NCBI GenBank assembly: GCA_023515725.1
Contig: JALDTO010000208.1
Span: forward strand, 840,534 to 904,533
Source: Amoeboaphelidium protococcarum X5
Lineage: Eukaryota; Fungi; Aphelidiomycota
DNA: 64,000 nucleotides
Direction: 5' to 3'
The position numbers and the translations under genes were made by a program. How positions within the stretch are numbered: the first letter of the stretch is position 1; every line of letters begins with the position of its first letter. The notes under the pieces are model-generated. The model was not told the origin of the DNA, made no database searches, and saw nothing but the letters and a program-made list of their open reading frames with translations. Shown here piece after piece: positions 1-12,058 of this stretch.

Positions 1-79
1 CGAAGCTTCAGCCAAAGCGATGTTTAAAGCACAAGGAGAAGATTGAAAACCACGAATACACGGCAAAGTACGATTAAAG

Positions 80-655
80 ATGACAACGGGTGAGAGGGAA
101 GAATCAAAGGGCGGATTATCACACGCTGAATAGGAAGCACTGTTAAATTATACGTGGAAGCAGACTTTGAAAGAGGTGGATCTGTGCTTTCCTCTTGGAT
201 CCGCAATTTAGCTCAAGGGTCGCGACTTTAGTATTGACATCAAGAAAAAGAGTCTGAGAGTTGCATTGAAAGATGGAAGTCGCGTCTTAGCAGAAGGATA
301 ACTGTATGGAAAGATTTTAATTGATGATTCCACTTGGACATTGATGAATACCGCATCTGGTCAAGTGTTAGATATTCATTTGGAGAAGGCGACCAGTGCG
401 TCAATGAAATGGTGGCCACACGTGCTTACGCATGAACCTCAACTTGACACCTCCAAAATAGAGCCAGAAAATAGTAAACTAAGTGATCTGAATGGTGAGA
501 CGCGTGCTGTAGTTGAGAAAATGATGGTTGAGCAGAGAGCCAAAGCGGTCGGTCAGTCTGCGGTTGATGATAGTGAGCGCAAGAAGATGGAGATGCTTGA
601 GAAATTCAAAGCTCAGCATCCCGAGATGGATTTCTCCAATGCTAAATTCAGCTGA
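80..655 (+). CDS. NUDC: Nuclear movement protein NudC (CS/p23 domain + NudC C-terminus)
   Basis: With TAR=Gln, one frame runs from ATG 80 to TGA 653-655: YTWKQTLKEVD...DDSTWTL...IDTSKIEPENSKLSDLNGETRAVVEKMM-like...FKAQHPEMDFSNAKFS. Confidence 0.93.
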
Positions 656-719
656 ATTGTAATAATATCATTTAATACTTTGTAATAGCAGTAAAAATAA
701 TATATTCGTTTTGTATTTA

Positions 720-1115
720 TCATTGCATAGCAGTCTCCTTCTAAACTCTAGAGTGATAAGCTTTGGACACTATATTCCACGCGTCCATGTATCTGTCCAT
801 GCACTTGGCAAGACAAGTTTACTCAGAGCTATCCAGCTTGGTACCAGGCTTGGTGACGCATTTCTTGAAGCATTTATCATTCATAGTCTACATAAATATA
901 AGACGCAGTTCATAGCGCGAACGAGGAGTAAAATTAAAATATCATAATGAGATTGGACAACTTACATTCAAAAGCTCCTGGGCATTCAACACGGCCATCT
1001 CGGCGCGTACTTGGTCCATAATTTAATCTTTCTACTACAGTACTTACGCGCCATTTAGTCCACCCATTGAAGAGTCGATATCGGGCGAAGAGCTGGCTGT
1101 CGATGAAAAGTCCAT
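720..1115 (-). CDS. TIM13: Mitochondrial small Tim chaperone Tim13 (one intron, ~888-965)
   Basis: [63 protein letters not shown]; twin CX3C motif; GTAAG donor; TGA at 720-722. Confidence 0.9.
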
Positions 1116-1314
1116 CCTTGGTTACTGTACTTTTTGGCGTTTAGCAAAATGCTGAATGATTAAAATGATCAAAAGAGGGAAAATGTCCAATTTTCAAGAG
1201 ACCGACCTGACCTCTCAAGGTAAGTTATAAACATCAACCAAAAAAAAAGATTGAAGCTAATTAAAATACTTTGATTTACAACAGATATTAAATTCAATTA
1301 TATGTACCTGAATA

Positions 1315-2844
1315 TCAGCATTGGAATTTAGATACACCGACTATGGTCCAACACTAAGAATCAGACAAGGAGTCGACATCGGCTCTAACACGAGAAGATG
1401 GACACAAGGCAGTGAGTGGCAGAGATACTGACTAATCTTGATCAGCCCGGCTAGTACCTAGATATTTAATAGCGTGCCCATTTTATGATACTTCAACGAC
1501 TTACAGTGCCACCCGATGCATTTAGCTCACGTAACAATCAGTCTGCTGCGAGTCCAAAATCACTTGATTGTCCTTTCCCAGTCTGACGATCCTGCAAACA
1601 ACATCCATATTCATTGCATCCGTCTCCACAGGACTGAGGACAACATGTGTATTGTAAGCGATCGGTGTGCCAGCAGGTGCGTAAACTCTCGAACCATCAC
1701 GGCAAGTAAGCAGGGAACGAACAATCATGGGGGTCCAGTCTTGAGAGTCAGCAGTTAAGTGTCGTCGATGCTATAACTGATTCTATGGCAATGTCTACCC
1801 AACATTTATATAACGCGTTCGCACATTTTAACAATTGATACGGTTAAAAAATGCTACATTATCACCACATAGAATGGCACCCACAGGTGCTTTGATACCG
1901 GGCCGACCCAATGAAGCAGTCTGACCATGCTGTTTAGATTTGGTAACTTTCTTGGAAGGCTTTGATATAAGCTAGATGTTGCACGATAAAGCTTCATATA
2001 TCTCGCCATCAACATTTGCACTAAGTTTTAGATTAACATGACCAACTTTAAGGTTATCATGACCAGATTGCGACGACCGCTGGGTAACAGTGGACGGAAC
2101 ATGGAGAGACTTGAATGAACACGTTGCCATACCATTGGCAGGCAAACTTATCTTACTCAACTGATCAGCTGCCGCAATCTCTAGGCTATTGATACTCAAA
2201 CCCAATCTGAGAACACCATGAACGTTCTTACCAAATCTTGACTGGTCAGATACGACTATTTTTGGTGGAGGACACATAAAACGCTTCTCTTGTCCATAAG
2301 ATTTCTAGACAACAACCGCGTGCCAACATTCAAAACGATAATGATAATCTCTTGGAGTATAATCTCCAGACAAAGAGGAGATTGAATCTTGTATTGAAGC
2401 AGGTAGAGCAACAGGATACGGCATCTAAACAGCGCACAGTCTAGGAGACGGAGTTGGTGCAATCTATGGAGGCGAAGCATAACCGGATCTTCTATCACAA
2501 TCCGAAACAACTGAAGATGCATCAGACGATGTATATTCATCATGTGGAGTTTCTGTGTAGAGCAGATTCTAAATCGCTAATCGGTTGCTATGAAACTGGG
2601 GACGATCCTTTGATAAGCAATCTTTGCCAGATAATGGAGATCCTTAAGCGTTATCAGCAGCTTCAATAGCCATCAGAAGAACATCAAGACCAGTCTGCTA
2701 TTATTGATGCGGCACAGGAGCGGTGTTCACACAGATACGTTTCGTAATAACTGACTCGCTATGATCACCAGAGTCGAGACACCGCTTCAACAAGCCAGAT
2801 TAAGCGAGCGGTAGTGACACTTAGGCAGAAGCAGGTGCAATCAT
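1315..2844 (-). CDS. CSL (CBF1/RBPJ/Su(H)/Lag-1) family transcription factor, LAG1 DNA-binding + beta-trefoil domains
   Basis: Single ~509-aa frame with CSL signatures VVQKSYGQEKRFMCPPP, IQLISKPSKK and VAFFNRINCQNVRTRYI; low-complexity N-terminus as in fungal CSL proteins. Start codon inferred. Confidence 0.88.
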
Positions 2845-2939
2845 TATTTATATACGGAAAGACTGAGTATTATTATATCCCACAATAGCTGATGGATAGA
2901 ATAAAGAAGTGAGTGAACAAGTAATGACGATAAAGAGCC

Positions 2940-3339
2940 AGTGGGAAATATTTGAGGCAAGCCGTGTGAAAGATCGATTGTGATTTTCAACAATCGTGTG
3001 GAGTCAACTCCGCCTGCGTGATTTTCCGTTTCGTCGGTTCCCACGATTGTAATGGCAGCGCTGGCAAACAAAGGCACCTTGATGAAGCTTATAAGACATT
3101 CACTCCCGTATATTAATTTGACATTCAAATATGGAAGATGATAGTGACTAAATAAAAGGTTAGTGTTGAAGCCCGTATAAATAGACAGACATGAAGCTTG
3201 ATTTTTACGATGCATCAAGGTTAGTGTGAGAATCATTGTTGGCGTGGGAACAGCTGATGCTCATCGATCGATGGGATGGCGTGTGAAAACTTTCCTCGTC
3301 ATCACATCATCAAATTTTCACACGGTGATTTTTCACACG
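2940..3339. promoter_or_regulatory. Cluster of CSL-type binding sites (GTG[G/A/T]GAA) upstream of the CSL gene
   Basis: AGTGGGAA 2940, CGTGTGAA 2963, TTCCCACG 3038, TGTGAGAA 3225, CGTGGGAA 3243, CGTGTGAA 3280, TTCACACG 3317, TTCACACG 3332. Confidence 0.75.
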
Positions 3340-3444
3340 CATAATTACTATCACCGTCTACACAACACACAACGATCATCAAAGAAGCTACTAAATCAAC
3401 TATAATCATAAGAAGCAAGAAACATTCATTGTGATCAAAGAGAT

Positions 3445-4509
3445 TCAAATTTACATTGTAAGATGCTAAGGTACTGACTTGGAGTCATCATCGACTAAGT
3501 ACTTGGCAATGATCTCCTCCGAGAGCCATTGCTATCCAATTTACATGTGACCGCCATCTTTGGTGAGTAAAATCAGGCGATCGCTCTCATCCAACTGTTT
3601 CAGACCAATCCAATCATCCTAATACAATTCAGATTCGCGTAATGACACTAAGCGCTTACCACTATCACTCCATTGTCCAAACCAGGCAGTTTCTTTAGGA
3701 ATAGCCATGGTGTCATTGCTGAACATCACCAATACCAACTTGTTTAACTTGAGCATATTGTTCTTGTAAGCTTCATTCTTGTCGGCTTTTTCATTATTGA
3801 TGTCTGGCAAAAATATGTTGGACCATAAGTAAGAATCCAACTACTAAATATCACGATAGTATTAGGCCTGAATCACGCGGGATTGAACTTGAGGCAAGTA
3901 TACACCCCTCTTGATTGCCATCCTAGCCAAGCTACACCACCAAGAGCTTTAGACAACATCGTTAGAATCTTCTCCTATCAGTGTCTCTTGTATCTCATCA
4001 CAATTAGGCATAGCAGATTATCCGCCGTGCTGAGAGCCAAAAGTGATCAAATTATAAACTTGAACAGAGTTGCAACGCTCAATGTATGCCCTCAAAGCCT
4101 ATCCACCTTGTGAGAATCCGAGAGCATTAACACCTGACGCTTTTAACAAATCCAAATCAGCCTACGATACTGGTTTCATGGTGCGCAAATTAATCACATT
4201 GACGCCTGAACTCGATTTACCATTCATAACATAACACAATCCCTGTACCTGGTCATTCAGATTGCCAAAGAAGGAAGCCTTTTAATCGGAATCTGCACTC
4301 CCATCACCGATTTGCACAGAGTAAACATTAACATCTGGTAACTGATCCCATATCTATTTGGCCACACTTACCATTGATCTTTCGTTACAACAGCTGTCGC
4401 CCATACCATGCCACAGCAACACTGGTTTTCCCTGTTATGACGCGTTAATTACACTCTAAGACAGAGCTATAATAGTCAATATAACAATTTTTACAGACAC
4501 CATAGCCAT
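3445..4509 (-). CDS. PPT1: Palmitoyl-protein thioesterase 1 (secreted/lysosomal)
   Basis: Signal peptide, then PVLLWHGMGDSCCN, FLPDINNE, YKNNMLKLNKLVLVMFSNDTMAIPKETAWFG, LYQDDWIGLKQLD; TGA at 3445-3447. Confidence 0.92.
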
Positions 4510-4789
4510 TTATTAGTAGAATTTTGGTCAATTCTAAACAGAAAGAATTAGTACAAAAGACTAAATTTTTAGAAATATTTAAAGCACCTCCTTAACTGAA
4601 ATAGATGTGTGTGATTGGAGCACAATTTAGTCACCTTTGGTAAAGCCATAATAACACGCTCGGAACTTCAGCTACCTACCACAAGATTTTCGTTTCAGGA
4701 ACTGTCAAAATTCCGCAAAATATCTTTATAGAGAGAAGCAAGGATTATAGTGTAAATATCAAGTATGTCTTTGTATCTGACTCTTTTAA

Positions 4790-7525
4790 AACAAATAAAA
4801 CGCTTGTTTTCTTTTGCACCGGTAGTGTTTTGCACCTTGCACCCGGAGAAACGCACCGAACTCGCTTTGTTACAATCTCGACCGTCTCGCATGTCTGGCA
4901 GGAAGCGTTCTAGAGCAGTGTAGAGTGACTCGTAGCCATCTGGAGGGGGTATCACCACCTCCAACAGTAGTACTGGCATCCCAGCCGTTGATGAGTGTGC
5001 TGGTGTTGGCAGTAGTGTCGGCGTATCCGCCTCCTCAAGTTCTGGTCTGGCTGGGTGCGAGGCTGAAACAAGTGTTGTTAGCATGAATCAAACTGCTGAT
5101 ATCACTTCACAAAGTTCTGCTCAAGTCAGTGCTGCTTTCAATAGGTAGCTGGAGAATGAAGATGAAGATGACGACGACGATTACGACTCTGATGATGGTC
5201 TGGATGATGAGCAGTTGGCGAAGAAGGTGAAGAGACGCAAGAAGTCGGAGAACAGCCATGTGTATCGCATTGAAGCGGCGTACAAGTATAAGCTGGATGA
5301 AGGCATTGGAGAGACGTTGAAGCTGCTGAGGTTGACTCGATCCGACGTATCTGTGCCACTCACTGGCGGTAGGCCTTTGGCTGTGAATAGTATGTAAGCC
5401 TACTAGAAGCATTACAGAGGATTGCGGTACTTTTTTGCGCTAATTGGTGACTACAGCTCGAGTTTAATGCTGCTTCCTAACCCCCCGCAGTACACACCGT
5501 CAATGAACGCCAAGAGCATCATTTTGTTTATCAAGTTCAAGCGTAATGAGAAGGGTTCTTTGCTAAAAGACGAGAATGGCAACGCTGTGAAATGTGTCTA
5601 TGGGCACGATATCAAGTGCTAGGGTGGTTGGAATATGCCACAGAATGTTGACCAGTTGTTATCGGCTGTCTCTGTGCTGCATGATAGTCGTAATTAGAGG
5701 GGGGAGTACAGAGATATCTGCGAAGAGTGCATCCAACGTTCTGAGCGTGGTGATAGATCTGGCTGTCGGTTCCATCCGATGGCTCCTCGTATTTGGCTGG
5801 GTGGAGATCCAAAGAATTCTTCCCTCATGACTAACATGTAGAGATTGAACTCCCGCGATGGATGCAGCTACGTGTCCGAAGGCAGCTAGCCGCTCACACC
5901 TTGGGAATTACTACGTCTCCGCGAGTATTTCATCTCGAAAAATGATGCGAAGTCATTCATGATGTGGACGATGATTATCGTTAGTATCAAGCTATTTCTG
6001 CGCAATGATGAAGTCACCGATTTGAAAATTCATGATCCTAGGCTGGAAAATTGTCTCAACAAGGATCTTGCGACCTTTCAAAGTGATGGCAGTATATCTT
6101 CCCTTGCTTTCTACATTAAAGGCAAGTCTGATCGTGTTAGAGTGTGCTTGACTCTTTGGACGGATTATGATGTGCCCGAATTGTGCCCGGTTCGTGCGCT
6201 TTTGACGTGGATTTTTATTTCTGGGATTAGAACTGGATTCTTGTTCCCTCAAGAGAGTACACTGGATGCTGTGAAGCAAGTTGGGCATGCGGCGTACAAC
6301 ATCTCTTACGTATCTTATCATAGGCAGTATCAGAAAGCTTGTAAGATTGCTACCGGCAATCCCGATGGTAAATTTGGTACGCACACTAGTAGGAAGACTG
6401 GCTATTTGCTTGCTGTTTGGGGAATGGGATCAGAGATTGACATCACTAAGAGTGCGCGACACGCTTCGTCCGCTAATGCCGCATTGTATAAGAAGGATGC
6501 TAGCTATTTGCTAGAATTAGCGAAGACTAGACGTTTGGACGTGTCTTCCGTGGTAAGCAAATTCAGATCAGCCTACTGTGAGTAGCTATAGATGGCTCGC
6601 AGTCTGAATGCTGCCCATTCTAGAGGCAATTTTTGTCTGCAGCAGGTGAGTCAAGAGATTGTTCGTAGCTTATGTGGATTATCTGATGTTGATGCAGTTG
6701 GTGGACCTAGAGTGATTTACGATGCACTTCTCCAGTTGCAGAAGAAAGAGACTGTGCTGCAGCTTATTGAGGCAAAGTTGAAAGAAATTGCACCTAATGC
6801 CACTCCGGAGGAGATTAATGAGCTGCGTAGGATGCTTGAGCTTTATGCGAATGGATTGATTGCTGCCACTCAATCAGCTAAGTTGAAGTAGCCAAAATCT
6901 ACTCTGACTTCTCAATAATCTTCTTCCAGATAGTTACGTGAACAAGCTGCGGTTCACTCTGATGATGAACTCTATGAATCCGATGAAGAAGACACTGACG
7001 TAGCTGATGTTGTACCTGCCATCACAGCTGTTCAGTAGGATGAAGTTGTGAATGATATGCCTGGGAGAGAGAAAGTGAGAAAAGCGAAGACTGCCATGGC
7101 GAAGTTGGAGGCCATTCTTGCAGTGGATGATCCTGGCTCAACCGTCGGGTTATCAGCTGGCGCCAAATCATTCTACGTGAAGCAATACTGCCCGATCATG
7201 AAATGTCTGAGAAAGCACTTTGGCGGTGATTTGGATAAGTTCATCGCACATTGGGGGAACTTCAAACCAACTAGCTTCAAGACAAACAATTGCTCTGGTA
7301 CCATGGATGAGTGTAGTATTTGAACAAGACAGATAATATGGAGACTGAGATTGAAAGTGGATTTAATACAAAAAGTTTAATGCAAAATCATTGAGGATTT
7401 GTTTGAAACAACTGACTTGTCTGTTTTCTGCGAGATCACCGTCGCGCGCTCGATCGCTCGCGCATTCTTCCAACGTCAACCTTAACGGTTTCCGTTTTTG
7501 CACTTTGCACTTTTAACAATAAGAG
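4790..7525 (+). mobile_element. Putative Crypton-like tyrosine-recombinase DNA transposon (ends approximate)
   Basis: A single YR gene is bracketed by near-identical direct repeats TTTTGCACCTTGCAC (4828-4842) and TTTTGCACTTTGCAC (7496-7510), with an extra TTTTGCAC at 4812. No RT, gag or DDE transposase. Confidence 0.65.
4891..7323 (+). CDS. Tyrosine recombinase (phage-integrase fold), 810 aa, intronless
   Basis: One frame from ATG 4891 to TGA with ~15 TAG/TAA read as Gln. Catalytic set: LFLR(6001)NDEV, KGKSD, CPVRAL, GTH(6382)TSRKTG, ARH(6460)ASSANAALY(6487). A CEEC..GCRFH putative Zn site lies upstream. Confidence 0.88.
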
Positions 7526-7974
7526 CATTATACCGTGATGTCATTTTGATTGTATGCCTTGAAGGATCGAATCCCTCAGCCATGGCAATATATCCGAAAC
7601 TGATAGGCTTGAGCATTATAATTTAATTAAAAATTGCCTACAAAGTAAAAAAGAATAAATTTGTGATGTCTTATCTATAATGACGTGATCAAGTTAAGGT
7701 AAGGGGGTGAGACTGACACGTGTGTACGCCATATCATATAAAAAATTTGAAGCATTCGAACTTTTAATTGCGATTTACTTTACTTATTAGCATTCCTCCA
7801 CAATTTAGTCCAAATAATGCTAGTTCTGCAATTAAGGATATCTTACATGTGCGGCAATTCCCAAACGTTAGTCCTTGAAACAATGAGCAATGATATACAT
7901 TTACGCTAATGTACGCTGGTCCTTTTATAATCATGTCAAGTTAAACTTCAAGCATACAACTTCTTGTACCTTAA

Positions 7975-9228
7975 TCATTCGCTCCCGGCAACTTATGCCA
8001 TCTCTTTTAAATAACGAACTATAAACTCATCACCGATAGACTGAGCAATCTTTGTGGATTATTCAGCAATTTTGATAGCCTTGGCAGGATGAGTGACGCG
8101 GTAGATCTGAGACAGAATCATTAGAGATAGTGCCTGCTCTTACTTGCATGAAGATTTTACGGATTACAGTAGACATTGCTTTGCTTTATGATACTATTCA
8201 TTAAAGTAAAATCTAGCACCATCTATCAATGGCAACGTATTAGTGTCATTTGTCATATCCTAATTGTCCACAGATAGAACTTGCATCTGGTGTTCAATAA
8301 AGGCTCTCAAATCTGCGCCTACCGCATGATCTGTCGACAAAATTTGAAATGCATTACCAGCTTCCTAAAATTTCGCGTTCGACTGCAGCCATAACGCTTC
8401 ACATAGCGTCACTATCTGTTACTCACATTCTGAGGAAATCAGATTCAAAGAGTCTTAAGCGTCAGCAAGTCTGCGCTGACGTAGTTACACTAAATAGATG
8501 GCAAGGACTAATCTGGATTTGATAGCTCTCATGGTAGACAGATCTTGTTGAGACTAGCATACACTTTCTTCCAATAGTTTCAATCCTTCAGCCCCAATCT
8601 CATCATTATTAAATGCAATACATGACATCAAAGATACTAAAGCGTTTAAAGCAGCTACAGACATGCAACTAAAGTTACCATTCAATAAGGTTCCATCGTA
8701 ATTAGCAATTAAGCTCTGCAATTCTTGCACAACAGGCTTGAACAATTTCACGTCATTCATCACTGATATACATTGTGGGATAAGTGAGTAGATCTTGTCT
8801 TCAATATCAAATGCATCTTTCATGTACTACTTGCATAGCGTGATGATTTACAAATCTTGCTTTGATTGGGCCTGTTTCAGAACTTCTTTACAATTCTGTT
8901 TCAGCAATTTCGTGTCGCCATTCTGATAGAATAGCTGCAGTTTGAATTTATTGACTTCCATTTGCAATGTATAAAAAGTTTCAGCAGACTATGCAGATTT
9001 CTTTATCAGCATTTCCAGTTTGCAGATATATTCTAAAACCATGGCTGATGGTTCAACAGCGTAATTGGATATCAACTCCAAGAATCTTAGATAAGCATTA
9101 ACATACGTAACGAGATTTTCATTTGCCACAGCATTATCAATGAATATTTTGTATAGATAGCATGCTTCAACGTGTTTACCATAATGTAAGCAAGATTCTG
9201 CCAACTGAATAAGGCTTTAATATTTCAT
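7975..9228 (-). CDS. TPR/helical-repeat protein, probable cohesin loader subunit MAU2/Scc4-like
   Basis: Long frame with TAR=Gln. The N-terminus (LIQLAESC) and C-terminus (FYFNEQYHKAKQCLLQSVK..QALSLMILSQIY..STKIAQSIGD) resemble MAU2. 5' end uncertain. Confidence 0.5.
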
Positions 9229-9489
9229 CCTTATGCGGTCTAAGAGCTAGTATCAAATTAGTGCATATAAGGAATGAATGAGTGATACGAAACAATTGTA
9301 AAGAAAGAACTTTTACAGGTGAAACAATTCTAATGATAATGCCTTGAGATGGAGAAACATGACGCGTTTAGATAAGCGAGATGGTTTCTGGTCGCGTTGA
9401 CTAAGCGTGAAACTTTCTCAATCAAATATCTCTCTCATTCAGAGTGAGCGATTATAGATCTAATCGCAATCCAAAAGATTTTAATAATT

Positions 9490-11082
9490 ATGGACAGTAA
9501 TTTGATAAGATTTGCTGTTGCTTTATTTGCATCTTATCCGCTCAGTCTTCTTTACATTTCTCTGTTTCCTTTGAGAGAGAAGCCATGTTCTGAGTAGCTA
9601 TAGCTGATCAAGAGTTTGTATTGTGGAGTGATCGGACTTTCTATGGGATACTATGTTTATGGTTGGCCTTGTGTATTCCACGTCTCGTTAGCAATGTTAT
9701 ACTCTTATATTCTTGGTTAATATTAGCATCGGCGAGTGCCTATTCTGATCTTTGGTCTCAGTATTCTACATTTATCTTACTGTCATCTGCGTCGTCAGAT
9801 CTTTAATCCTAACAATTCCATAGATCTCACTGGTCCTATGATGATTGTCACGATAAAAGTGTCTTCATTCGCGTGGAACGTCTTTGATGGCTGGAACAAA
9901 GAAGATAAATAAGCGGTGTAAGATGGTAGTCGGTACTCTATAGTTTAGTATCCATCTCTGGCAGAGTATTTTGGATTCATCTTCTTTTTTCCAACGTTCC
10001 TTTGTGGTCCGTCTATTGAGTTTAATGATTTTCTGATCAGCATAAAGGGATTGAGTGTGCCTGGTGTTTAGATGATTAAGACATAACATGTAGTGGTTCC
10101 CGCTATGATGCGACTGTTGTATGGAGTATTTTTCACTATATATCATCTGGTATTGAGTTAGCTTTTCCCTCCGTCTGTGTATCAATCCGCCGAGTTCTTG
10201 GCATTTAGTCTGAATCCTATAGTCTTAATTCAGCGTATATTTTTTATCTATATGTGTTTATAAGGATTTAAAGCCAAGTTTTATTGTGTATGGTTGATTA
10301 GCGAAGGTGCGTGTATAGCGATGGGATGTGGTGCTAAAGTTAGATCTGATAAGTCACTGTACTTTCGGTACTTGGATTCCAAAATCGGAGATGTAATCAT
10401 AGATTGGGGTGGATTAAGTAATGTGGCACCTCTAGCTATAGAGACTGCTACTAGCTTCCAATAGCTGACGCGTATGTGGAATGCGCGAACTCATCATTGG
10501 TTGAAACATTATGTTTACATTAGAATTATATAGGCGGCAAGTCCTAAAGCTGTGCCTATTGATTCAAAAGACGTGAAGGTTGGCGAGGATGGTATTGCTG
10601 TAGTGTCCAAATCAGTTTAGCAGAAGGTTAGTCATCGTGTACAATCCATGGCAACTTATGGAGTATTCGTGATTAGTGCGTTGTGGCATGGATTCTACTC
10701 TGGCTATTATTTGACTTTTGTCAGCGGCGCATTGTTGACCAGCGTTGAACGGAAGCTTCGAAAGCTTTACTTTCAGTTCCGTGAAGGTTTTGAACTTTAA
10801 GATGAACCTTCATAGTAAGGCAATGGTGGTGTCAAATAATAAGATAGCATGACTGCTGCCTTGAAATTACAATTTTACGATTAAATTTGGAATATTATGG
10901 GATGGATTGCATCGCAAATAATGCTGTCTTACTGCACCATACCCTTTATCACGTTGTACTTGCGCGAAAGTATGGCAAGTTGGCGCGCTGTGTTCTTCTT
11001 CGGCCACGTTGGAATAATTGTGTGTCGTCTACTGTCCGCCCTTCTCCTCAAACCAAAGAAAAGAAATATAAAAGAAGAATGA
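9490..11082 (+). CDS. MBOAT lysophospholipid acyltransferase (Ale1/LPCAT-like)
   Basis: Multi-pass hydrophobic protein; DLTGPMMIVTIK, FFFPTFLCGP, WNARTHHWLKHYVYIR, FVISALWHGFYSGYYLTF. Confidence 0.9.
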
Positions 11083-11227
11083 TTTTCAATTAATTAAATG
11101 TGAAATTTAAAATTGCTTTTGTAGTTTTTACTGAAATGGTTTTTAAGTTTCGACTATTTTCACTGTTACTCCAGTTCGCAATTGTTAGAAGCTCGCGCCA
11201 TGAACTTTTTGTGATCAAACAAAAGTG

Positions 11228-12058
11228 ATGAAAGAGAAAATGACAAAGATGGAAAACAAGCGAATTAAATGCAGGATACCACTGCGAGTAATTAGAAAAG
11301 ATTTAGTAAATATCCGAGATGACGATGAATCTAATATGTAAATAGATGGCGAAGTCCCTAAAAAGTAAGAGAAAGTGTACAATTACTTGATCCACTACCC
11401 ACTTGTCAATGCTAATCAAATGCCAAAATTGGGACGCGATATTGCGATAAAGCCTTAAAGTGGAATCTTGCAAATGACAGAGTCGATAGATTCAGAAAAT
11501 TATGATGGAGACATGGGATAGACGTATGGTCAGGCTGTGAATTATAGTCTGCAGTAATCATCGGATGCATAGCGGCCAATGATGAACAAGATTGACGCGT
11601 TGAAAGAGAATGAACTGTCAGGCATCAGCTTATATGGCGACCGATTGATGCAAGGTAGAAATAAGACTGGGTAATACGCTGTAGGTGTACTCAGGAATGG
11701 TGAATTGGAAGTGCATGTGTTGAATGCCGTGATATCCGCCAGACCAGATCTCTCTCACATTGATCTGCTCAAGACCGCCACGAAAGATCAGCAAAAGGAG
11801 ATGGCCACCAGTACTGATGAGTCCGATTATGAAGATAAGAAGGACCTGAAATCTGGATAGAAAAGCAATGAAGGCAATAATGGTAATAACACCAACTCCA
11901 AGAATGGTAAATCTCCCTCTGCTGTTGTAATAAAAAAAGCTGATGACGCAGCTGACCACAACTAGGCTCTGAGTTCACGTCTGCAGCACAAGCGAGCTGT
12001 AGAAGATGAAGAGTGGATATTCTGCCAGCGATAAATCGGCGATCCATCTCTATTATGA
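11228..12058 (+). CDS. RNA polymerase III subunit Rpc37/RPC5 (Sin-like N-terminal domain)
   Basis: YLIHYPL, QYAVGVLRNGELEVHVLNAVISARPDLSHID, acidic stretch, EDEEWI near the C-terminus. Confidence 0.7.

Follow-up and report, generated by a model that had tools for sequence, protein, structure and literature searches.

Is the tyrosine recombinase (YR) gene found in the window, a stretch of 64,000 nucleotides from the genome of the aphelid Amoeboaphelidium protococcarum (contig JALDTO010000208.1), a gene of the host or the engine of a mobile element, and in the latter case, to which kind does the element belong and does it still move? The original prediction, made from the letters alone, was of an autonomous, possibly active DNA transposon from a poorly described family, with a recombinase of unusual architecture. 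Our analyses indicate that positions 4772-7529 are very probably a copy of a Crypton-type DNA transposon that is autonomous and has the recombinase as its only gene, and that this transposon was active recently and probably still is. Coordinates of all features are collected in Table 1.

The mobile unit was delimited using 10 kb fetched around each of 20 copies in the window's own assembly, which comprises 23.6 Mb in 346 contigs. The stop-free piece of 231 amino acids (aa) that covers the catalytic domain was present at 100% identity at 21 assembly loci at least, with a single further paralogue at 40% identity. Nineteen of the fetched copies are complete and exactly 2758 bp long, and the sole site at which they vary corresponds to window position 4947 (T/G, synonymous); the open reading frame (ORF) is intact in every one of them. 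The twentieth copy, L029, is aberrant at its 5' end and has the right flank NTAY that is described below. Counting copies had been proposed as a check on the original prediction, and in exact-pattern scans of the assembly the 5' end was intact 25 times and the 3' end 26 times. The flanks of the copies are unique and mutually unrelated except for one 107-bp match. Searches of the element for terminal inverted repeats (TIRs) found none, and split or inverted terminal repeats of the DIRS/Ngaro type were likewise absent. The ends do contain a 15-nt subterminal direct repeat (4828-4842 and 7496-7510) made of TTGCAC motifs, five of which lie in the same orientation within the terminal 140 bp where 0.044 would be expected (Poisson P approximately 1e-9).

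All left junctions read ...R-T-A-W-N-N-N-N-T followed by the element start TGTATCTGAC..., and all right junctions read ...AAGAGCATT followed by N-T-A-Y.... In the left flanks, T and A occupy positions -8 and -7 in 19 of 19 copies, R is found at -9, and T occupies -1 in 18 of the 19; in the right flanks T and A at +2 and +3 and Y at +4 are found in all 19. In the window copy, the last flank T is 4771 and the first element base is 4772. An unoccupied site was recovered when Logan contigs of four sequencing runs were compared with window positions 3772-8529. Three of these runs (X5, which is a biofilm metagenome, X6 and X8) belong to as many studies, all distinct from the probable source of the assembly. 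In all three, the left flank of copy L036 (...GCATAAAATACGCA) continues directly into the window from 7527 on (ATT-ATACCGTG...), so that their contigs carry the empty site ACGCAATTATACC (...ACGCAA-TT-ATACC...). The matching occupied junctions are the attL of L036, ACGCAA-TT-GTATC..., and the attR of the window copy, ...GAGCA-TT-ATACC. Judged by the empty site, insertion adds 2757 bp and TT comprises the only duplicated bases, one TT being kept when the site is empty. Comparison of the empty site with attL and attR also fixes the target as RTAW-N4-TT-NTAY, which resembles the element's own TTGTAT end; the 5' TTGTAT and the 3' TT-NTAY form a 6-bp near-repeat. Near-repeats at the termini of Cryptons have been described in the same way (PMC3212892; PMC13465315). 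A comparison of filled and empty sites between strains had been suggested together with the original prediction, and its outcome is direct evidence for presence/absence polymorphism of the insertion.

Three other interpretations of the junctions were rejected. A true target-site duplication does not fit because the flanks are duplicated no further than TT, and element-carried coupling sequences like those of Tn916 do not fit because the four variable bases left of TT occur in the empty site. A symmetric RTA-N8-TAY site whose overlap would be 8 bp was discarded since the junctions are without mixed element and target bases.

In at least two insertions, the left and the right flank are found on different contigs of the assembly. 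The window bases 7527-7533 pair with the left flank of L036 (contig C98), and the left flank of L032 (C233) pairs with the right flank of L028 (C179); the latter two fit one site, GATA-TT-GTAT-TTTATCC, as judged from the homeologous L040 locus. The left flank of the window copy has a homeologue of 89-91% identity on another contig, diverging 27 bp before the junction, and the homeologue of its right flank is on a third contig. There are two possible causes for the discordance: recombination between copies (translocations), or joins made by the assembler through the identical 2.76-kb repeats. The pairing of left and right flanks of individual copies is consequently not trustworthy, and the discordant flanks are a warning of rearrangement at the copies, whether in the assembly or in the genome. 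In Chlamydomonas, the active CryptonF-1_cRei gives rise to reciprocal translocations as well as inversions (PMC9977147), and similar rearrangements at copies would be one way to read the flanks seen here.

A few copies and contigs are irregular. In L029 (G000:C192:411772-421664), the normal first ~21 bp are missing and an A/T-rich sequence (...CTATCTAATAAAAATTATTTACAAAATACA) is joined at about element position 22. The 107-bp flank match noted above is between the right flanks of L028 and L040, at 92.5% identity over ~107 bp, and contains the hairpin-like CCTCAAAGGTGAAGAGATATCACCTTTGAG; the insertions at these homologous loci are 5 bp apart (TT-GTAT and TT-TTAT). The 600 bp left of copy L030 (L030:2883-3482, G000:C200:278750-279349) recur with 100% identity at C158:102861-103460 and at C97:14-613 and have partial matches elsewhere. 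They look like another repeat family that adjoins the element and contains a TGA-free frame of 3 kb or more. Contigs that start or stop in the element are C68 (43-74), C132 (44-75), C235 (43-74), C264 (42-73), C138 (40-69), C160 (43-72), C177 (41-70), C213 (40-69), C157 (74-103) and C203 (2546-2575), the last of which (2575 bp) is element sequence throughout.

The sequencing runs were also used to assess activity. Unitigs of the source run contained one dominant element sequence with a single difference from the window, at a depth of 3504 compared to 62-74 for the flanks, an approximately 50-fold excess that is not equal to copy number. The ratio of element to flank depth was ~1.5 in run X8 and ~3 in run X5. 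Across X5, X6 and X8 the element differed from the window by 0.1-0.4%, against mostly ~2-4% for single-copy flanks. One contig of run X6 spans 6811-7387 and then continues into 18 untemplated A, and the depth of this run over single-copy flanks is very uneven (336 versus 22-60) and RNA-like. On this evidence, the element is probably transcribed. In run X5, a joint skipping from 5180 to 6979 was treated as noise, the 22 letters involved lying in acidic low-complexity sequence. The suggestion that the element is autonomous and possibly active is thus borne out by at least 25 near-identical copies, exact ends, an empty site and a contig with a poly(A) tail.

As originally described, the ORF is broken under the standard code, by 15 in-frame TAR (TAA or TAG) codons, and is continuous under translation table 6. 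The 64-kb window is crowded with long TGA-bounded frames that are rich in TAA and TAG, and TAR is therefore read as sense here. The TAR=glutamine (Gln) code is reportedly indexed for the genus Amoeboaphelidium. The code was assessed by aligning the table-6 translation to 33 standard-code homologues. Gln makes up 13.6% of the homologous residues in the 15 TAR columns, compared to a background of 4.0%, and is the commonest residue at TAR columns 244, 269 and 567; TAG codons fall on columns in which the homologues have a conserved Gln. With TAR accounting for 15 of its 39 Gln codons, the codon usage of the recombinase shows evolution in a TAR=Gln host, in agreement with the long residence that had been proposed. 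The translation is collinear with full-length homologues over aa 140-808 (E 1e-136), as expected of the intronless gene that was claimed. The ORF takes up 2433 of the 2758 bp, leaving no room for a reverse transcriptase (RT) or RNase H, both of which the original prediction had likewise stated to be absent.

The motifs that had been read from the sequence were all recovered. Apart from the acidic and basic runs, which lie in the weakly conserved N-terminus, they vary little or not at all within the recombinase family. In the numbering of P0003, a standard-code homologue, the residues C210, C213, C226, R305, K346 and R461 are invariant in 62 homologues; H436, R439, H462, Y473, C694, F706 and C724 are nearly invariant, and at least 90% of the homologues keep H229. 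These columns include the full R-K-HxxR-H-Y catalytic set and the CxxC...CxxH module that precedes the catalytic domain. The distinct C-terminal domain likewise aligns as a separate conserved Cys/His block, presumed to bind DNA or zinc. The recombinase probably consists of a disordered acidic/basic N-terminus, a helical domain resembling a core-binding domain, a CCCH zinc knuckle and a Cre-like catalytic domain, and then of a predicted helical extension, an acidic linker and the C-terminal Cys/His domain.

Sequence searches gave few leads to the wider relationships of the protein. Pfam and NCBIfam scans, run on the homologues and on the stop-free pieces searched separately, assigned no family to any of them, and only NDC10_II recurred among the matches, below threshold, in 7 of the 62 members of the family. 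The PDB yielded no match in either sequence or profile searches, and there was no detectable sequence similarity to Cre, XerA, XerH or lambda Int. The C-terminal piece had no match in Pfam (E up to 1), NCBIfam or the ESM Atlas, where a feature search returned only sub-0.9 matches to unnamed bacterial clusters. Little was gained from a word-indexed protein search with the family profile.

Structure prediction was more informative, and a structure comparison had been proposed with the original prediction. An AlphaFold model of the catalytic piece, folded with 66 homologous segments, reached a predicted local distance difference test (pLDDT) score of 97.4 and gave a Foldseek match with an E value of 1e-5. 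In this model, the catalytic piece is folded like Cre (VIA-align Z 17.4 over 185 residues at 3.3 Å), closely followed by XerA (16.6), XerH (15.9) and lambda Int (15.5); Z is lower for Flp (10.0), Ndc10 (8.9) and the DUF3504 domain of QRICH1 (7.7). The full-length architecture was modelled on P0003 (pLDDT 86.9, predicted template modelling score 0.73, first 52 residues disordered). The model fits both domains of Cre with a target-normalised TM-score of 0.64-0.69, and Ndc10 ranks seventeenth. Cre, XerA, XerH and lambda Int share with the recombinase the catalytic fold and the complete catalytic set, but the element's protein is ~480 residues longer and includes two Cys/His modules. Its sites also differ from those of the Cre type in that they are without clear inverted arms and the crossover apparently takes place at T(T) rather than across a 6-8-bp overlap.

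A HMMER search of 1.84 billion cluster representatives found 700 relatives of the catalytic domain at E<=1e-3, the best of them 44% identical, and dozens of full-length relatives also have the zinc module and the C-terminal domain. Since the Cys/His modules and the catalytic set are conserved in the homologues, the architecture that had been called unusual is the norm of the family: 'poorly described' holds for this large, Pfam-less group, and 'unusual' does not. Named relatives are found in the chytrids Zopfochytrium, Chytridium, Rhizoclosmatium, Blyttiomyces, Physocladia, Irineochytrium and Quaeritorhiza, and in Rozella, Aphanomyces stellatus, A. astaci, A. euteiches, Plasmodiophora and the diatom Epithemia. 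Most of the remaining relatives are on metagenomic contigs of 2.3-2.9 kb, as expected of collapsed repeats. The A. stellatus relative (GCA_009835185.1; L049:3830-6754, L050 and L051) is multi-copy and young, with three copies 99.6-99.7% identical over at least 2925 bp. These copies share a TA-rich 5' boundary (...ATGTATTC, ...TATATATATGTATTC), the only boundary visible, and all three contigs end at one and the same base. In the window's own genome, a paralogous recombinase ORF, L022 (G000:C264:1093045-1096740), is 34-40% identical to the element's recombinase and 96.9% identical to MP228_004128, a hypothetical protein from Amoeboaphelidium protococcarum in a cluster of 14 sequences.

Cryptons are YR elements without TIRs that are flanked by 4- to 6-bp near-repeats derived from target microhomology (PMC3212892, PMC13465315). 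The element has a YR with the R-H-R-Y set (plus K412 and H524) and no reverse transcriptase, is dispersed in 25-26 copies, and has short near-repeats that match its target and no TIRs; it is a Crypton in the broad sense of the term (Goodwin 2003; Kojima & Jurka 2011). CryptonF was rejected because its defining GCR1_C domain (PF12550) is absent from the element, with no match in the C-terminal piece or in any of 62 homologues. A six-frame search of the genome placed PF12550 at 12 loci, none of them at the element's copies. Those 12 places include G000:C214:709815-710051, C136:376409-376645 and C146:498156-498392 (86 bits, 10 identical matches, TAA codons inside). These strong matches belong to a separate multi-copy family, which looks like a genuine CryptonF-type element in the same genome. 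A Starship captain was excluded by the lack of a DUF3435 (PF11917) match and by the size of the element, 2758 bp with one gene and no cargo, so the original view that the recombinase is neither a GCR1-type Crypton nor a DUF3435 captain stands. DIRS/Ngaro elements, which like the Starship captains are eukaryotic mobile elements using a tyrosine recombinase, were rejected because there is no space for an RT/RNase H ORF and no split or inverted terminal repeat; they also differ in that the element is without RT, RNase H and methyltransferase. CryptonA/I was rejected because there was no DUF3504 (PF12012) match and QRICH1 DUF3504 scored far below Cre in the fold comparison.

The closest description is that of CryptonS, the Cryptons of oomycetes and a diatom (Kojima & Jurka 2011; PMC3212892). 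In layout CryptonS resembles the element: it has a single YR ORF in ~3 kb, no GCR1_C, no TIRs, 5- to 6-bp terminal direct near-repeats (6 bp in the element) and a C-terminal region that is conserved within the group and may be homologous to the one seen here (PMC3212892), and the relatives in Aphanomyces and the diatom Epithemia are suggestive of the same group. CryptonS differs in its ends, mostly TATGG or TTACTG as opposed to TTGTAT / TTNTAY, and in its hosts, since the element resides in an aphelid with TAR=Gln and most of its named relatives are chytrid. Compared by the description of CryptonS only, the element looks CryptonS-like, and it joins a known transposon class as a new member, possibly within CryptonS, and is not an element of a new kind. 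There are also likenesses to CryptonF. The active CryptonF-1_cRei ends in CACCG and targets CAYCG (PMC9977147), so that there, too, a terminus is nearly identical to a short target, and CryptonF-1_RO of Rhizopus has the terminal repeat CAGTAT. Copy number has risen in CryptonF and in the element alike despite conservative chemistry, and the sub-threshold NDC10_II matches point to a Crypton-derived YR-like domain. The difference is in the accessory domains, GCR1_C in CryptonF and the CCCH and C-terminal Cys/His modules in the element.

How would such an element move? Following the Goodwin model for Cryptons, the recombinase would excise the element as a circle whose joint would read ...AAGAGCA-TT-GTATCTGAC..., and this joint would recombine with chromosomal RTAW-NNNN-TT-NTAY sites by crossover at the shared T(T), the subterminal TTGCAC repeats probably serving as accessory binding sites. 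An insertion made in this way would lack TIRs and would not truly duplicate its target, leaving just TT with the near-repeat TTGTAT / TTNTAY around it. We only infer the circle, the catalytic activity of the recombinase, what the zinc modules and TTGCAC do, and the way in which copies multiply. Tyrosine recombinases normally exchange strands 6-8 bp apart, and if a classical overlap of 6-8 bp contained mismatches, roughly every second lineage should retain bases of the partner. The element sides of attL (GTAT) and attR (GAGCA) never vary and the target sides always do; none of 19-20 copies carries the partner's bases at a junction, and both exchanges therefore appear confined to T(T). Alternatively, one pair of strands may be exchanged and the junction resolved by replication, or repair may be biased.

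Several observations weigh against a live Crypton-type transposon. Ten contig ends stop 40-75 bp inside the element termini, which means that the assembler broke at some copies and that such repeats are hard to assemble; the near-identity of the copies may be inflated if repeats were filled with consensus. Flank pairs are discordant, run X6 is not recorded as RNA, and no circle-junction contig (7529 joined to 4772) was found in the four runs, a weak negative since contigs drop rare forms. As judged by the junctions, crossover is restricted to 1-2 bp, which is atypical of tyrosine recombinases, and conservative recombination does not by itself explain a gain in copies. The assembly breaks, the discordance and the missing circle joint would all suit a real Crypton-type transposon that no longer moves, with the identity of its copies due to one past burst or to assembler consensus. 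We consider this unlikely. The source unitigs are independent of the assembly and still gave one dominant sequence at ~50 times the depth of the flanks, all 19 ORFs are intact, a contig ends in a poly(A) tail, and apparent copy number depends strongly on the strain, a site that is filled here being empty in three samples.

The same depth of ~50 exceeds the ~25 assembled copies, as it might if the element were mainly an extrachromosomal circular plasmid with an Flp-like recombinase, after the manner of the yeast 2-micron circle, and integrated rarely; the recombinase fold would suit plasmid maintenance as well as transposition. An abundant circle would however give a unitig with the 7529-4772 join, which none of the four runs contained, and inverted repeats such as Flp uses are absent from the element. 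With 25-26 distinct chromosomal junctions at each end and depth being no measure of copy number, a plasmid is very improbable. Finally, an intact, conserved and probably transcribed ORF could belong to a recombinase that has been domesticated as a single-copy, syntenic host gene, the finding that the original prediction had named as contradicting it. The opposite was observed, in copy number as well as in insertion polymorphism: at least 25 dispersed identical copies have unrelated flanks, their presence varies between strains, and the full catalytic set is kept. We give this explanation practically no credence, and a mobile Crypton-type transposon is the reading that we retain.

A bolder version of it is offered tentatively, as the less probable one by a good distance. 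The element may belong, as a live member, to a Crypton lineage of its own, for which Pfam has no model and which is marked by the CCCH knuckle and the C-terminal Cys/His domain; its hosts would include aphelids, chytrids, Rozella, oomycetes, plasmodiophorids and diatoms. The recombinase would exchange strands within the 1-2 bp of T(T), the copies seen here would stem from a burst in a single strain, and because of its TAR=Gln codons the element would be limited to hosts that share this code. Movement could then involve a single strand exchange resolved by replication, as in integron attC sites or CTX phage; if true, single-strand exchange with replication might account for the rise in copies as well.

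The copy in the window is intergenic, ~245 bp upstream of a gene for a palmitoyl-protein thioesterase, beyond which lies a gene with a LAG1/CSL DNA-binding domain. Active Chlamydomonas Cryptons favour gene-proximal intergenic DNA (PMC9977147), and in this respect the copy is again similar to CryptonF.

Table 1. Features of the element and its surroundings, in positions of the window
Feature	Positions	Strand	Remarks
Gene with LAG1/CSL DNA-binding domain	1315-3003	-	E 1e-7; in-frame TAR
Palmitoyl-protein thioesterase gene	3445-4527	-	Pfam E 1e-22 on one piece; in-frame TAR
Left junction, attL	4763-4776	+	Target half-site GTAT (4763-4766, consensus RTAW), 4 variable bases, TT-GTAT
Mobile unit, 2758 bp	4772-7529	+	Limits from BLAST between window 1-12000 and the 20 fetched copies
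Three direct TTGCAC motifs (4814, 4830, 4837)	4814-4842	+	Candidate accessory recombinase-binding sites
Single ORF, 810 sense codons	4891-7323	+	13 TAG and 2 TAA in frame; terminal TGA
Acidic run	5158-5211	+	Poorly conserved N-terminus
Basic KKVKRRKK	5221-5244	+	Resembles a nuclear localisation signal; follows the acidic run
CxxC-x11-CxxH, putative zinc knuckle	5719-5775	+	Between N-terminal helical domain and catalytic domain
Tyrosine recombinase catalytic domain, aa 334-564	5890-6582	+	Stop-free; model, fold matches and conserved columns
R371	6001-6003	+	Catalytic, conserved column
K412	6124-6126	+	Catalytic, conserved column
H498-x-x-R501	6382-6393	+	Catalytic; H498 6382-6384, R501 6391-6393
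H524	6460-6462	+	Catalytic
Y533	6487-6489	+	Catalytic
Conserved C-terminal domain	7039-7320	+	C-x3-H...C...C at 7186-7314; separate block, aa 720-808
Probable polyadenylation site of element transcript	7384-7387	+	61-64 nt past stop codon; run X6 contig
Two direct TTGCAC motifs (7498, 7505)	7496-7510	+	3' partner of subterminal repeat
Right junction, attR	7523-7533	+	Element end GAGCA-TT through 7529; target ATAC 7530-7533, consensus NTAY

Cryptons are among the least understood eukaryotic transposons, and to our knowledge no Crypton recombinase has been characterised biochemically. It was not until 2023 that their activity was observed directly, in Chlamydomonas (PMC9977147). The copy described here is compact, intact and probably transcribed, with base-exact ends, a 14-bp target consensus and a natural empty site, so that a recombination assay can be designed from it directly. 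Its 15 in-frame TAR codons would stop expression after transfer to hosts that use the standard code. Within its own host, the element is a clear-cut example of a transposon burst restricted to one strain, here in the sister lineage of Fungi.

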